A DNA stretch of 62,918 nt, counting the filler, from Lenisia limosa (lineage: Eukaryota > Protista > Breviatea), in the NCBI GenBank assembly GCA_001655205.1. It is 13 parts of 13 records of this genome, joined end to end, with 100 filler letters (N's around TTAATTAATTAA, not from the genome) between each part and the next. Parts side by side here need not be neighbours in the genome. Positions count along the whole stretch, not along the records: positions 42,985 to 48,562 come from LPNZ01009961.1; 12 more parts are not named here. One strand, written 5' to 3'. The position numbers and the translations under genes are program-made. Positions 42,761 to 48,562 of the stretch are shown here, one piece after another (within the stretch, counting starts at the first letter, position 1; every line of letters begins with the position of its first letter). Below the pieces are notes generated by a model. It searched no databases. It was not told the DNA's origin and saw only the letters and a list, made by a program, of their open reading frames with translations.

Positions 42761-43099
42761 CCTAACCTCAACAGACATCGGCGACTCCCCTCCCTCACCC
42801 TTTACCCCGGACGTCGCCTTTCATCATAATAGCGTGGTTGTCAGGATTTCTTTTGGGCGGTCGGTTTTTTTTTTTTTTTTTTGANNNNNNNNNNNNNNNN
42901 NNNNNNNNNNNNNNNNNNNNNNNNNNNNTTAATTAATTAANNNNNNNNNNNNNNNNNNNNNNNNNNNNNNNNNNNNNNNNNNNNAGGGAGGGGAGGGGGT
43001 ATCCATACCTTGGTGTGTGCCTCTTGTGCTCTTGTGGGATTTTTAAGTCTGCAGAACTGAGAGGAGTGAGGGAAGGTGAGGGAGAAATGGTGAAATGGT

Positions 43100-46000
43100 G
43101 AAATGGTAGAGGAGTTGTGTCAGAGAGATTCCACAATAAAAGGGGAGGAAAGTTGACTGCTTACATATTGACAGGAGCGCAACGCTTTTGACGGGACTCA
43201 TCATGCGTGGTCCTAAAGATGTCACAGGAGAAAAGCCAGTTGCCACTGACGAGAATAGATGAGCTTCGGGAGTCTAACGAAATAAATGGTCTTCGTCTTT
43301 CGACTCAGAGATACGAACCAATTCATCATTAGCAAGGGAGGGGGGGGGGGGNNNNNNNNNNNNNNNNNNNNNNNNNNNNNNNNNNNNNNNNNNNNNNNNN
43401 NNNNNNNNNNNNNNNNNNNNNNNNNNNNNNNNNNNNNNNNNNNNNNNNNNNNNNNNNNNNNNNNNNNNNNNGACCAGTATTCAAACATCCCCTCTTACTT
43501 CTTCTTTTCTTTGATGCCCAGGGGTGTTGAGCGTGCTGAGGGGAGTGGAGGGGCAACTGGGTGTTGCGAGGGAGCCGAACGTGAGGGCTAAAAACGGTCA
43601 GATTAATGGTTATATTTGTATCATTTTGTGTAGAAATAAGAAATAAAACAAGGAATTATTAGTCCAAACCTTCCGCTCCATCCAGCTGAAGTAGGGAGAT
43701 GTATAATCTAACAGAGAAAACTATTAGCAGAATACCCAAACCCCCTCCCCTATCTGATATTATCATTTTATAAAAAAGTGTGCACAATACCCAATCTTCT
43801 GGTATCCAGATTTATTCAACGTACATCTTGCTCTCAAAAAAGCTACCTATCATCTGCAGGCCTACCCCAAAAAGTTCTTCGGCATCGTGATGAATTTCTT
43901 TCACGTCGTCACAGATTTTCTCAACATGTTTCCGATATGCTATTACCTTTTCATTCACGGACTCCATCTTTTCTTCAAAGGACTCACGGTTCTCTTTCCG
44001 GGACCCCACATTTTCTCTAAACGACACATGGTTCTCTTTTGAATATTCTTGTTGTACTACTTTTTTCTCTTCTTTGGGCTCCTCTGGCTCCTCAGAAGCT
44101 GCAGGAACCCGGGGCTCCTCGGGGATCTGGGAAACTTCGGGGATCTGGGGTAATTGTGGAGGTGCAAGCGGGATATTCAAATTCAACACTGGTGAAGGCT
44201 CAATACCCTCATCACCGCTGATTTCATCACCACAGGATGCGCTGATTTCAATTTCAGGCGGCTCCCAGTAGCTGCCAAGGCGTGTGTCACTGTCACTCGC
44301 GCTGCCAAGGAAGCCACGGGGGTCTTCATTTGCATTTCTTGCTTTACGTGCATGTCTTGCATTGTTTAACCGGTTGGACTTGTCTGCAGGATTTGGATTG
44401 GCTTTGCACCTCGGCCCTACGGTAAGGGGTTTGTCCTCATAGGCATTGACAGGGGCTTGTTCCTGGGGTGGTAAATGAGAGAAAGAAAGGGGGAGAGGGG
44501 GTGCTGAAATCGCCACCTCACTTGATGGAAGTTATGACCCAGCATGTGATATAGAAATGAGAAAAAAACAAGGTTGTATCTGACCGAAGCCGTCCACACC
44601 AACACGCTAATAAGAAATATTATATTACAGTACACCCAATCATTTGCCTTTCAACTCTATGCACACAGCATTCTGCGTGCACAGAGTTACAAGGCGTTTG
44701 GTAGATATCATATCATATGTAGGAATAACTGTGTATTCAAAATAATGAAGTCACAAACGTGCGGATTCGAGCTTTCAGCTTTTTATTATCATAAGATATC
44801 ATTAACTTAGAAATGATAAAGCGAAGATTGCCCATATATGGTATTAACGAAGTGCAACAATTACACGACAAGCATAAAGATAGATCAAGGATACATGCCC
44901 GAGGTGCCATTATAATGCCAAATGAGAAAAAAAAGAGATCCACAGAGTCTTTCCGGATTTTATGATAGAGACAACGCATTATTCAAAAAAACAGAAGATT
45001 CGTTGCACTGATTTTCTCTTCTTCTCCATNNNNNNNNNNNNNNNNNNNNNNNNNNNNNNNNNNNNNNNNNNNNNNNNNNNNNNNNNNNNNNNNNNNNNNN
45101 NNNNNNNNNNNNNNNNNNNNNNNNNNNNNNNNNNNNNNNNNNNNNNNNNNNACTGCTGCTGCAATTCAAGGGCCATTTTCCGGTCCTTCTCCTCCTGCTC
45201 CAAACGGGCATTGTTGACTTCTGTACTTTCACTCTGGGGGGGTGTGAAGAGGAAAATTTATGAAACAAAAAAAGGAAGACCAAAATCAACTCTATTGCAG
45301 CAACACAGACCAATTTGTCAAAAAAAAAATTATTCGTGTATGATACCCACATGATATGTGATTTGAAAAACACATAAAACCGAGAAAAAATAACACCCAG
45401 GACAAATCTAGAGCAGTGCATGAGGGGGAGGGTGGAGTAAAATTGGACAATATATGAAACAAAAGCTCGTAATCTGCTAACTGACGATAAAACACGAGGG
45501 TTGATAACAACAAAGCAAACAAAGCCCAGTCTAGTCGCCCCGCATCCAAGTAAAGGAAGCTGTGATCAAACGCACAGTTAAAAAGGAAAACTCTATAAAA
45601 CCACACAAACATAACATAATGGGCACCACTCCCCGTCTTGCAGTTTCCAAACCGTGAATCCATTTCCACACGTTTTAATTCATCACCCCCCCCCCCCTGC
45701 TCNNNNNNNNNNNNNNNNNNNNNNNNNNNNNNNNNNNNNNNNNNNNNNNNNNNNNNNNNNNNNNNNNNNNNNNNNNNNNNNNNNNNNNNNNNNNNNNNNN
45801 TAGTACCATAATATTTTAATTATTATAGTATTATAATGCCTAACGCTAACATTTTTTTTCAAAACATCAATATTTTCATCAAAACATAGGTTTCATTACA
45901 TACCTCAATATGAATGAACACACTACACTTTACCCCCGCAACTTACATAAAAAAAGATAAACTTGCCGGTCTTAAAAACACACTTTCTTAACCCCCCTCC

Positions 46001-48450
46001 CGCACCTGCTGCATGCTCAACACAAGCTGCCTTGTCTCATCATCCATGGAGGCCCAAACATCGGGGTCGATGCCGTCCATGCTGGCCAAGCCGTCTGAAA
46101 ACGTTCTTTTGAGAGAATTCGCTTCTAGAAAAACATCCTTCTCTGAAGAACTCAATTGGCGTCCAGAGGATATGACTACCAGCAGAGTGTGACCTACAGC
46201 AGAGCCTCGTATAGGGGGTGGCAGCGAGCCACAGCGCTTGTTAACAGGTTTTTTACGTACTAAAGGGTGGGATTCGGAGAGAGAGGTCAAAGGAGGGTCA
46301 AAGGAAGATAGCTTTCTTCTGTCTTCTTCTTAAGGTCTGACAAGGTCTTGTTCTACTCAGACTCTCTCTTACTTACTTAACAGCTTACAGATATAGGGAG
46401 TGTTTGGTGGTTTATTTGGGTCACATTTGCCGCTTTTTCCGAGCCTTCATAAATTTGCGCGCCAAAATACAATCACATCGATTCGTTAATAATTGTTTTG
46501 TTTTAGGAAAGTAAAATAAAGCTTTATGTCAATTTCTCCAGTCCCTCGGAGGGAAATGAGACCTTTACCAAGCTTTCAAAGACACCACAAACACAACAAA
46601 CCCTTCACCACATTGATTGAAATCATTCACAATCCCCTCCCAAAATAAAAACATCATGACTGGAATAAGAATACACAATAAGCAATCATAGTTATGTCGT
46701 CCCTAGTGTCATGAGGCGGCATCGATGATGACCTTGCTCCATGCATCTAAAGCGTAAGAGGAGCAACAGTGGCTGACGCAAGATTGAAGTATGAGAGGCT
46801 ACGACTGACGTGCAAATATCAAGAATCTTCACATTGGAATAAGACCACCAAAAGGCGGCAAACGAGTTGTCATCATCGCCAAAAGAAAAAGGAGGGGGGG
46901 GGCATACCAAAAGAAAAAGGAGGGGCACATACCATTTTTCATCGTCATTGGTTGTTTTGATTGCTATGCAGCTCAATGGTGACGGAGCTGAACGTATTAG
47001 TGTGGTATAATATGAGGGCAGGAGATAACAGAGACAATACTCAGACGCAGACTAAAATATCCACAATGAATTCAGTGCCATGCATGTGATCATCANNNNN
47101 NNNNNGTATGGCAGTGATGCTTTCCACAAACCTTCAATAAATTTGAGGAAATCATGATGAATTGGATGCCAGATGTCGGACTCTGAAAAGGTCAATAGAA
47201 GCCGTGCCAAGGAGGTGGGAACAAAGGGCAAATAATACTCAGACGCAGACTAAAATATCCACAATGAATTCAGTGCCATGCATGTGATCATCAACGTACA
47301 AAATGGGGGGGAGGGGGGGTGAGACTCGAAACTAACCTTGATGAGCGAAGGGTCCTCTCATTTCCGTGCGACTTTCATTTGATGAAGATCTAGAACAATG
47401 AAACTTGTTGAGTGGGGAAGAGAAAGAAGGGACAAGGATAAGCTTCGGCAGTCTAACGAAATAAATGGTCATCGTCTTTCGACTCAGAAACACGAANNNN
47501 NNNNNNGGCGAGGGTGAAACTAACCTCATTCCATCATTCGCTGGACTCCTTAAAGGTGACGACAAGATAAATGGTTCGTCTGAAAGAGTAAGAAGAATAG
47601 CATGGAAAGGGTGGAAAGATGGAGAAAGCAGGGCTGAGGAGCGCATAAAAGGATAATCATAGGTCCGTCACACCAAAACGGTATCGACTTCACTAAGACT
47701 CGTCATCTGTTGTCTTCATTGCCCATGGAGGGAGGGGGGGGATAAAGCTTACCATGGATGAGTGGGGACTGATTGTGTCTTGACCTTGTGAGATGTTCTT
47801 GCCTTGGGCGGCGATGGGTCTAAGAAGTCAGAGAAGGTAAGGAAGAAGAGAAAGAGGGGAGAAGGAAAAGCTTCGGCAGTCTAACGAAATAAATGGTCAT
47901 CGTCTTTCGACTCAGAAACACGAACCAATAAAGGTATTCATCACTAGCAGGGGGGAAGAAAAGGCTGATTAGCAGGCATACCATTGGGAATTGGGGAGGA
48001 CGGCTGGTATCGCAGAAGCAGGCTTAATCTGATCTGGTGAAAACGTGCTAAGAAAAGAGAAGAGACGCGAGAACGGAAAATACTCAGACGCAGACTAAAA
48101 TATCCACATTGAATTCAGTGCCATGCATGTGATCATCAACGTAAAGTGCGCACAGTTGTAATGAGTACTATAACAAACCTGAAGGGGAAAGTTGTACCGC
48201 ATCTCGTGGAGAAGAGTGCTATTGTCCAAATAACTAAAGCGTCAAAATTGCCAAATAAGTGAAGGCTTTAAAATCAAAAAGCAGGGCTGAGGAGCGCATA
48301 AAAGGATAATCATAGGTCCGTCACACCAAAACGGTATCGACTTTACTAAGACTCGTCATCTGTTGTCTTCATAGCCCAAAACAGAGGAAATGAAATGCCC
48401 ACTCACTTTGCTTTCCAAACAAACGGCAACGCGGTGAACCAATGAAGATA
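43100..48450 (-). CDS. Multi-exon protein-coding snoRNA host gene (partial; low-complexity regions, putative UBM-like ubiquitin-binding motif)
   Basis: Minus exons with GT..AG ends between the snoRNAs: LSSLVHRVAVCLESK, YLDNSTLLHEMRYNFPLQ, QIKPASAIPAVLPNSQ and EPFILSSPLRSPANDGMR. Larger exons are GIDPDVWASMDDETRQLVLSMQQ (~46000) and the Pro/Glu-rich exon within ORF 43812-44516. Confidence 0.6.
43262..43332 (-). ncRNA. C/D snoRNA, U18 + snR58/SNORD104-like double guide, divergent copy
   Basis: ATGATGA-attggttcgtatct-CTGA-gtcgaaagac-GAAGA-ccatttatttcgttagactc-CCGA, with terminal stem gct/agc. Confidence 0.75.
45428..45545 (-). repeat. Family A copy; a second partial copy lies at ~45234-45300
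   Basis: Reverse complement matches the family A core. Confidence 0.75.
47038..47095 (-). ncRNA. C/D snoRNA type X, copy 1 (5' end abuts gap)
   Basis: TGATGA-tcacatgcatggca-CTGA-attcattgtggatattttagtctgcgt-CTGA-gta. The D' guide is complementary to conserved 18S GCCAUGCAUGU. Confidence 0.8.
47236..47297 (-). ncRNA. C/D snoRNA type X, copy 2
   Basis: Identical to copy 1, with terminal stem tac/gta. Confidence 0.85.
47441..47496 (-). ncRNA. U18 + snR58-like C/D snoRNA (5' end lost in gap)
   Basis: ttcgtgttt-CTGA-gtcgaaagac-GATGA-ccatttatttcgttagactg-CCGA. Confidence 0.8.
47631..47724 (-). ncRNA. C/D snoRNA, U15/snR75-like, copy 1
   Basis: Terminal stem gggc/gccc. ATGAAGA-caac-agatgacgagt-CTTA matches the U15 5' arm (ATGAAGA..GATGACGAGTCTGA) and is complementary to LSU CUCGUCAUCU. 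The terminal box reads CTCA, which is non-canonical. Confidence 0.7.
47869..47948 (-). ncRNA. U18: U18 + snR58/SNORD104-like double-guide C/D snoRNA, complete copy
   Basis: GTGATGA-atacctttattggttcgtgttt-CTGA (compare U18 ATTGGTCCGTGTTTCTGA), GTC-GAAA-GAC hairpin, GATGA, ..cgttagactg-CCGA (compare SNORD104 GTTAGACTGCTGA), stem gct/agc. Confidence 0.9.
48081..48142 (-). ncRNA. C/D snoRNA type X, copy 3
   Basis: One substitution relative to copies 1 and 2; boxes intact. Confidence 0.85.
48284..48377 (-). ncRNA. U15/snR75-like C/D snoRNA, copy 2
   Basis: Near-identical to 47631-47724 (2 substitutions). Confidence 0.7.
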
Positions 48451-48503
48451 AACTAAGAGGGTGAGGAAAAGAAGAAAAGCAGAAAAAGAAAGAGCGAAGG
48501 AAA

Positions 48504-48562
48504 AGCTTCGGCAGTCTAACGAAATAAATGGTCATCGTCTTTCGACTCAGAAACACGAACCA
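48504..48562 (-). ncRNA. U18 + snR58-like C/D snoRNA (5' end cut by spacer)
   Basis: Identical to 47869-47927. Confidence 0.8.

Follow-up and report, generated by a model that had tools for sequence, protein, structure and literature searches.

GAS5, UHG/SNHG1 and the chicken gas5-like hotspot are multi-exon, spliced and polyadenylated RNAs with short exons, in which each intron carries one box C/D small nucleolar RNA (snoRNA). Paralogous snoRNAs within them have arisen by cis-duplication into neighboring introns, a process described in host genes of vertebrates and nematodes (PMC2653536). Hosts of low coding capacity with one snoRNA per short intron are also known from Drosophila (dUhg) and from the UHG-like clusters of Neurospora crassa, where the spacing between snoRNA and 3′ splice site is under constraint and alternative splicing or exon skipping of the host occurs (PMC2780460). 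In the imprinted SNORD116/SNORD115 arrays each intron of a long non-coding transcript holds one of many near-identical C/D copies, and the polycistronic clusters of plants, trypanosomatids and yeast yield several snoRNAs, paralogues included, from one transcript. Here we describe an array of intronic C/D snoRNAs in the breviate Lenisia limosa (assembly GCA_001655205.1). The window is a stretch of 62,918 nucleotides (nt), filler included, made of 13 parts of this genome; the region read is the minus strand of the piece at 42985-48562 (record LPNZ01009961.1), and all coordinates are positions in the window. Very probably, 48562-46416 covers the 3′ portion of a GAS5/UHG-type host gene whose transcript is spliced and polyadenylated, whose introns carry a single box C/D snoRNA each and whose exons are mainly spacers.

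Repeats were located by a repeat search, and the copies, together with whole introns, were aligned with MAFFT. Three families emerged on the minus strand (A, B and C), to which a single-copy type (D) is added, giving ten snoRNAs in all. Of the four members of family A (~80 nt), three agree at every position of the snoRNA and are 88-96% identical over an 80-nt stretch that reaches into flanking intron; identity drops to 74% for the fourth, at 43238-43317. The two members of the 101-nt family B are 98% identical, and the 65-nt family C has three members. An initial annotation of this DNA had listed four, two and three copies at these places, in the order A, B, C, A, B, A, C, C and then a distant A, and the order found matches it exactly. 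All nine copies of the three types stand, but a tenth snoRNA of a fourth type (D, 46880-46797) had been overlooked.

The host gene has nine introns with one snoRNA in each, in the order A-B-C-A-B-A-C-C-D. All introns have GT..AG boundaries and measure ~130-190 nt; the snoRNA starts ~30 nt past the 5′ splice site and stops ~50 nt short of the 3′ splice site. The exons between the snoRNAs are 46-67 nt long and are bounded by AG and GT. Predicted exons are E1 (48407-48452, 46 nt), E2 (48179-48233, 55 nt), E3 (47982-48047, 66 nt), E4 (47753-47819, 67 nt), E5 (47525-47579, 55 nt), E6 (47337-47389, 53 nt), E7 (47132-47182, 51 nt, with good splice signals) and E8 (46933-46987, 55 nt). The last exon occupies 46416-46746 and contains a single AATAAA, at 46416. 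The host gene begins outside the piece, past its edge at 48562.

Splicing is documented by a polyA-selected RNA-seq run of the same organism (X2). Its key contig (record 12, 178 nt) aligns as 46664-46746, 46933-46987 and 47337-47376, matching two predicted junctions to the base: 46746 to 46933 and 46987 to 47337. The 5′ boundary of the last exon, both boundaries of E8 and the 3′ boundary of E6 are thus confirmed, and because a polyA RNA contig reproduces the junctions, the host transcript is spliced and polyadenylated. The contig fuses E6 to E8, omitting E7, which leaves C2 and C3 together in a single intron of this isoform. Placement of each snoRNA in an intron of its own, as the initial annotation had it, is therefore essentially correct save for this isoform, and RNA-seq, which had been proposed as the means of defining the host exons, bears out the two junctions but not the inclusion of E7.

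Two features of the introns deserve mention. Runs of C (5-13 nt) lie just upstream of many of the snoRNAs (A2, B2, C2, the type D copy D1, and A4) and in the intron at the piece end; their coordinates are 47951-47956, 47725-47741, 47305-47320, 46893-46901, 43339-43351 and 42985-43000. They may reflect the general intron composition of the genome or a processing signal. In addition, the 5′ splice-site region of the intron that bears the type D snoRNA is repeated in tandem at the intron start (46881-46932), as two copies of GTATG followed by a C run and CTCCTTTTTCTTTTG; the RNA contig is spliced at the upstream copy.

The host may have little coding capacity. The spliced RNA has stops in all frames, apart from a 94-codon ATG open reading frame (ORF) that spans E3-E8 and has its stop at the last exon junction. 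On this ORF hangs an alternative in which the snoRNA introns split the reading frame for a small, ~94-amino-acid protein or, in a variant, the 5′ untranslated region of the downstream protein gene, rather than a UHG-like non-coding transcript. The length of the ORF (p ~0.03-0.06 against shuffles) speaks for a coding host, as does the fact that skipping the 51-nt E7 preserves the frame. Yet that significance is marginal and the sequence is of low complexity; polyA RNA contigs fall on the host exons and none on the downstream protein gene; the AATAAA at 46416 precedes the ATG of that gene; and the host 5′ end, perhaps with the true first AUG, is outside the piece. We regard a protein-coding host as unlikely, though far from negligible. 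In agreement with the initial annotation, the host gene encodes no ribosomal protein. Vertebrate U18 and U15 are hosted by RPL4 and RPS3, respectively; the hosts here are neither.

The copies differ in how completely they can be read. A1 (48505-48562, U18-like) has lost its 5′ part, with the C box, at the piece edge, and its remainder is identical to A2. B1 (48284-48377, 94 nt, snR75/U15-like) has the C box AUGAAGA, the D′ box CUUA, the D box CUCA and the stem GGGC/GCCC. C1 (48081-48143, 63 nt) has the C box UGAUGA, CUGA as both D′ and D box, and the stem UAC/GUA. A2 (47870-47948, 79 nt) is complete, with the C box GUGAUGA, the D′ box CUGA, the C′ box CGAUGA, the D box CCGA and the stem GCU/AGC. 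B2 (47631-47724, 94 nt) differs from B1 at 2 positions. The 5′ part of A3 (47442-47496), C box included, lies inside a 10-N gap (47497-47506); C2 (47236-47298, 63 nt) was defined by the repeat search and alignment; and the first ~5 nt of C3 (47038-47095) lie inside a second 10-N gap (47096-47105). The type D snoRNA (46797-46880, 84 nt, snoZ122-like) sits in the last intron and has the C box AUGAUGA, the D box CGUA and the stem GGC/GCC. A4 (43263-43333, 71 nt) is diverged: 8 nt are deleted, the D′ guide differs at two positions and the C′ box is altered, but the D guide is kept.

Across the families the C box agrees with RUGAUGA in A (GUGAUGA/AUGAUGA), C (UGAUGA) and D (AUGAUGA), and in B (AUGAAGA) with one mismatch. 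A terminal stem is present in all four types. The initial annotation had credited every copy with C/D boxes and a terminal stem, which holds for the stems, except that these are only 3-5 bp long; as to the boxes, only type C is fully consensus.

An Rfam covariance-model scan, a check that the initial annotation had suggested, was run at permissive thresholds and gives SNORD18 as the best match for type A (A2, 31.3 bits, E = 0.0062, with the guide block GGUYCGUGUUUCUGA aligned) and snR75 (SNORD15 clan, CL00045) for type B (25.5 bits for B1 and 24.8 bits for B2, guide AGAUGACGAGUCU aligned). Type D matches snoZ122 at 46884-46793 (23.9 bits, guide AUAUUUGCACGUCAGU aligned). Type C on its own returned generic C/D matches only (sR4, 12.4 bits; SNORD26, 11.6 bits) and no family name. 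An exact-pattern scan of metagenome contigs for relatives of type A found none.

To find ribosomal RNA (rRNA) targets of the guides, the sequence upstream of each D or D′ box was scanned against 120 eukaryotic ribosomal DNA (rDNA) contigs from metagenomes; rDNA was also sought in viral contigs, where none was found, and the metagenome contigs were used instead. The predicted target is the rRNA residue opposite the fifth position from the box, marked below by a dot that follows it. Four guides show at least 10 nt of rRNA complementarity beside a D or D′ box, as duplexes of 10-11 bp with at most one G-U pair, and in all four the marked nucleotide falls in the +5 register. The D′ guide of type A pairs with AAACA·CGGACCA (10 Watson-Crick pairs and one G-U), that of type B with CUCG·UCAUCU (a 10-bp Watson-Crick duplex from guide position 2), and that of type C with GCCA·UGCAUGU of the small subunit (SSU) rRNA (11/11 in all SSU-bearing loci, at position 50-51); the D guide of the type D snoRNA pairs with CUGA·CGUGCAAA (11/11, in more than 80 loci). 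The chance that a random 10-mer matches a conserved rDNA 10-mer is p ~0.002.

Conserved methylation sites tabulated elsewhere include those of U18 (Am647/1313/660), snR75 (Gm2286) and U51/snR39/59 (Am805/1511/814) (PMC3511168), and the sites predicted for types A, B and D are these very sites. Type A is thus predicted to target the A at the U18 site of the large subunit (LSU) rRNA, type B the LSU G at the snR75 site and type D the LSU A at the snR39/59-U51 site. By guide and target, therefore, the U18-type and U15-type labels of the initial annotation are right, whereas the Rfam scores fall below gathering. For type C the predicted target is an SSU A at about position 51, which would be new relative to the known sites of model organisms: modification tables for plants, human and yeast have no 18S site between Cm38 and Um123, and the sole match to a literature search for 'Am51' was Am512.

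Type A may carry a second guide. Its D guide pairs with GAGUC·UAAC(G), and the C so targeted lies 14 nt downstream of the U18 site. The snR58/U104/snoR58Y site likewise lies 14 nt past the U18 site (661-647, 1327-1313, 674-660; Arabidopsis, human, yeast; PMC3511168). Because the D target sits at exactly this spacing, type A is probably a double guide that serves both the U18 site and the snR58/U104 site, with this C as its probable second target.

A number of observations weigh against the reading of a non-coding host with functional snoRNAs. RNA evidence comes from one polyA-selected run of very low coverage (contig depth 2.8), and given the skipping of E7 in its contig the rule of one snoRNA per intron is not strict; the 94-codon ORF may yield a small protein product. 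Three copies (A1, A3 and C3) are incomplete owing to gaps or the piece edge. Every Rfam match is below its gathering threshold: 31.3 against 41 bits for SNORD18 (RF00093), 25.5 against 40 for snR75 (RF01185) and 23.9 against 38 for snoZ122 (RF00343). D boxes are non-consensus in types A (CCGA), B (CUCA) and D (CGUA), and type B adds the C box AUGAAGA; the G of the sheared G-A pair is missing from CUCA and CGUA, while CCGA retains GA. Finally, the D guide of type A forms only 8-9 bp on generic rRNAs, which are not the host's own, and the D guides of types B and C and the D′ guide of type D have no convincing target in the 120 rDNA contigs. RNA folding of each snoRNA gave z-scores from -1.5 to +0.4, no better than shuffles, which is usual for C/D snoRNAs and uninformative.

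Could the repeats, then, be decaying snoRNA pseudogenes, or intronic repeats derived from snoRNAs, that form no functional snoRNA-protein particles (snoRNPs)? Non-consensus D boxes in three of the four families (with the C box of B besides), the low Rfam scores and the loss of D′-guide pairing in A4 would all fit such decay. The boxes are nonetheless probably not misreadings, because the +5 rule and the Rfam alignments fix their registers; and that the blocks are 98-100% identical amid randomized adjacent intron argues that the non-consensus boxes are maintained. Neither this identity, nor guides that hold 10-11-bp duplexes with at most one G-U at conserved modification sites and in the correct register, nor a spacing to the 3′ splice site kept at 50-53 nt is what decay would leave, and we consider it very unlikely that these are not functional snoRNAs.

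The spacing itself fits functional, splicing-dependent snoRNAs. In nine of the ten copies 50-53 nt separate the 3′ end of the snoRNA from the 3′ splice site, and in C1 33 nt. Eight of the ten introns contain a YTNAY motif whose A, a candidate branch point, falls 9-10 nt from that site and 40-43 nt past the snoRNA end; the scripted search for YTNAY found no motif for C1 or A4. Once its exon start is corrected by 1 nt, A4 too lies 50 nt from the 3′ splice site, and GUGAC, picked out by eye, would put the branch A at a similar place. Intronic C/D snoRNPs whose assembly is coupled to splicing, with the aid of Aquarius/IBP160, are known to show a constant spacing of the snoRNA upstream of the branch point (PMC8162545), and comparable distances are known in Neurospora and Drosophila (PMC2780460). 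The spacing in the array fits this position dependence (PMC8162545), and we infer that splicing-coupled assembly acts at the host gene. snoRNP proteins would bind the snoRNA during splicing of its intron; the lariat would then be debranched and exonucleases would trim it down to the snoRNP; and the mature RNAs would guide fibrillarin to 2′-O-methylate the rRNA nucleotide paired to the fifth position upstream of the D or D′ box.

Near-identical copies in a gapped assembly invite the suspicion that a single A, B and C were multiplied by mis-scaffolded contigs that end in repeats, or by joined haplotypes. The two 10-N gaps do coincide with the 5′ ends of A3 and C3, and no listed contig crosses 47096-47105 or 47497-47506, nor the gap at 45030-45151; depth in a set of DNA contigs (run X1, Logan; depth ~31) is near zero over 46891-47076; and the segment between C2 and C3 is absent from the RNA contig. 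On the other hand, every copy runs without a break into a unique flank of its own on one side or both, which is why we take the copy number to be genuine. Copies are separated by unrelated exons, which joined haplotypes would not produce, and single-position differences separate B1 from B2 and C1 from C2 and C3. X1 contigs at 47661-47890 and 47914-48139 link B2-E4-A2 and A2-E3-C1, although X1 is probably the assembly's own source data and so lends no independent support. Taken together, these points make an assembly artefact highly improbable. The RNA contig connects the exons that flank the gap at 47096-47105, and X1 contigs bridge 43352-43471 and 45703-45800, with true lengths of 48 and 43 nt. 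Assembly gaps adjoin homopolymers (C13 at 43339-43351, G11 at 45692-45702).

How the copies arose can be read in part from their boundaries. In whole-intron alignments snoRNAs of the same type are 98-100% identical whereas the adjacent flanks are randomized, and the snoRNA blocks are therefore constrained or homogenized. In types B and C identity begins 0-2 nt from the terminal stem and stops 2-7 nt beyond; in type A partial similarity extends ~30 nt downstream of the snoRNA. No similarity beyond chance was detected between exons, even for pairs expected to match under duplication of a whole unit. Since the exons are unrelated and identity is confined to the snoRNA, recent duplication of entire exon-intron units is disfavored. 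Most likely, judging from these alignments, the copies arose by cis-duplication within the gene and have been kept near-identical by gene conversion, by selection or by both; A4 shows what a non-homogenized paralogue looks like. The proposal is reasonable but not new, since such duplication has already been described (PMC2653536).

An alternative to DNA duplication with gene conversion is the precise insertion of snoRNA-sized units into existing introns, whether RNA-mediated or by template switching. Homology bounds within ~0-7 nt of the snoRNA termini in B and C are what insertion would produce, as is the want of similarity between copies in exons and upstream parts of introns. Retroposition marks (A-tails, target-site duplications) were sought in the flanks and none was found, so the copies do not qualify as snoRNA retroposons (snoRTs); type A copies share ~30 nt of partly similar downstream intron; the order A-B-C / A-B / A-C / C resembles a decayed unit duplication; and each insertion would have had to re-create the constant 50-nt spacing to the 3′ splice site. 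Precise insertion consequently seems improbable to us. A bolder proposal is doubtful to a somewhat greater degree: that this lineage tolerates D boxes lacking the G-A pair (CUCA, CGUA), through relaxed Snu13/kink-turn recognition, and that its snoRNAs have spread as exact snoRNA-sized units by neither retroposition nor segmental duplication.

Set against these results, the initial annotation was correct that the exons are unrelated to one another while snoRNAs of one type are nearly identical. Its explanation, snoRNA copying or gene conversion instead of exon duplication, holds insofar as recent whole-unit duplication is disfavored. It had also called the amplification recent, which does not follow: an old duplication would look no different if gene conversion or concerted evolution had since acted on the snoRNA alone. 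Nor is the assignment of all nine copies to one host gene sustained, A4 being diverged and situated beyond a protein gene at 46080-43812.

That intervening gene (43812-46080, minus strand; ATG at 46080, stop at 43812) lies outside the array. It has at least three exons, two assembly gaps and a 216-amino-acid last exon; one of its exons enters the gap at 45030-45151. The product is acidic and of low complexity, with no significant Pfam family, nothing above 0.52 in Atlas and no homologue at E ≤ 0.001 among 5.8 billion proteins. PolyA RNA contigs touch the host exons and not this gene, which is weak evidence that the two are separate transcripts. At 44473-44658 and 45217-45588 the summed depth of X1 contigs reaches 56,000-79,000 (baseline ~31; more than 2,700 contigs), which marks one or more very high-copy dispersed repeats in the introns of the protein gene, perhaps resembling miniature inverted-repeat transposable elements; many variant joints lie near 45270-45510. 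A weak snoU18 match at 45260-45324 was rejected: it has no C box and lies within the very high-copy dispersed repeat. At 45640-45690, within a protein-gene intron and beside the gap 45703-45800, GUGAUGA directly follows a run of G11; a D box, a terminal stem and an Rfam match were looked for there and not found, and the motif is probably due to chance.

Because A4 is downstream of this protein-coding gene, it most likely belongs to a second host gene with a transcript of its own. Two further exons of this second host are predicted on the minus strand, at 43212-43165 and 43056-43009; the intron between them holds no snoRNA, and a further intron opens at 43008. In an X1 contig (depth 60) 46887 is followed by 42985, with differences from the window at 46856 and 46850. 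From this junction we infer that a second, slightly different type D snoRNA probably lies just beyond the piece, in the next intron of the second host gene, which would then likely carry an A, a snoRNA-free intron and a D.

The host gene is of a familiar kind, that known from animals and fungi as the GAS5, dUhg or Neurospora type, and current understanding of snoRNA biology is unchanged by it. What it adds is a clear one-snoRNA-per-intron host with repeated paralogues and unusually tight branch-site spacing, useful for the annotation of snoRNAs and non-coding hosts in this genome. The details of note are putatively functional snoRNAs with non-consensus D boxes, a probable U18 plus snR58/U104 double guide and a predicted new methylation site in the SSU 5′ domain.

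Relative to GAS5 and UHG, the locus differs in holding up to three near-identical copies of the same snoRNA in one gene and in its minimal introns of 130-190 nt. Mammalian intronic C/D snoRNAs lie 70-80 nt from the 3′ splice site; the distance here is ~50 nt. The Neurospora clusters hold mostly different snoRNAs, in contrast to the repeated identical copies found here, and dUhg genes hold snoRNA isoforms. With SNORD18 (U18), SNORD15/snR75, snoZ122/U51/snR39-59 and snR58/U104 the Lenisia snoRNAs share guide elements and predicted target nucleotides; they depart from those families in their sub-gathering Rfam scores, in the union of U18-like and snR58-like guides in one RNA and in their non-consensus D boxes. 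SNORD116 and SNORD115 consist of entire exon-intron units repeated in tandem; their exons are related and their snoRNAs are orphans with no rRNA target, whereas the exons here are unrelated and the guides match rRNA. Lastly, the polycistronic clusters of plants, trypanosomatids and yeast are released endonucleolytically or carry several snoRNAs per intron; in Lenisia the snoRNAs occupy separate introns and keep a constant spacing to the branch site, an arrangement that implies splicing-dependent release.

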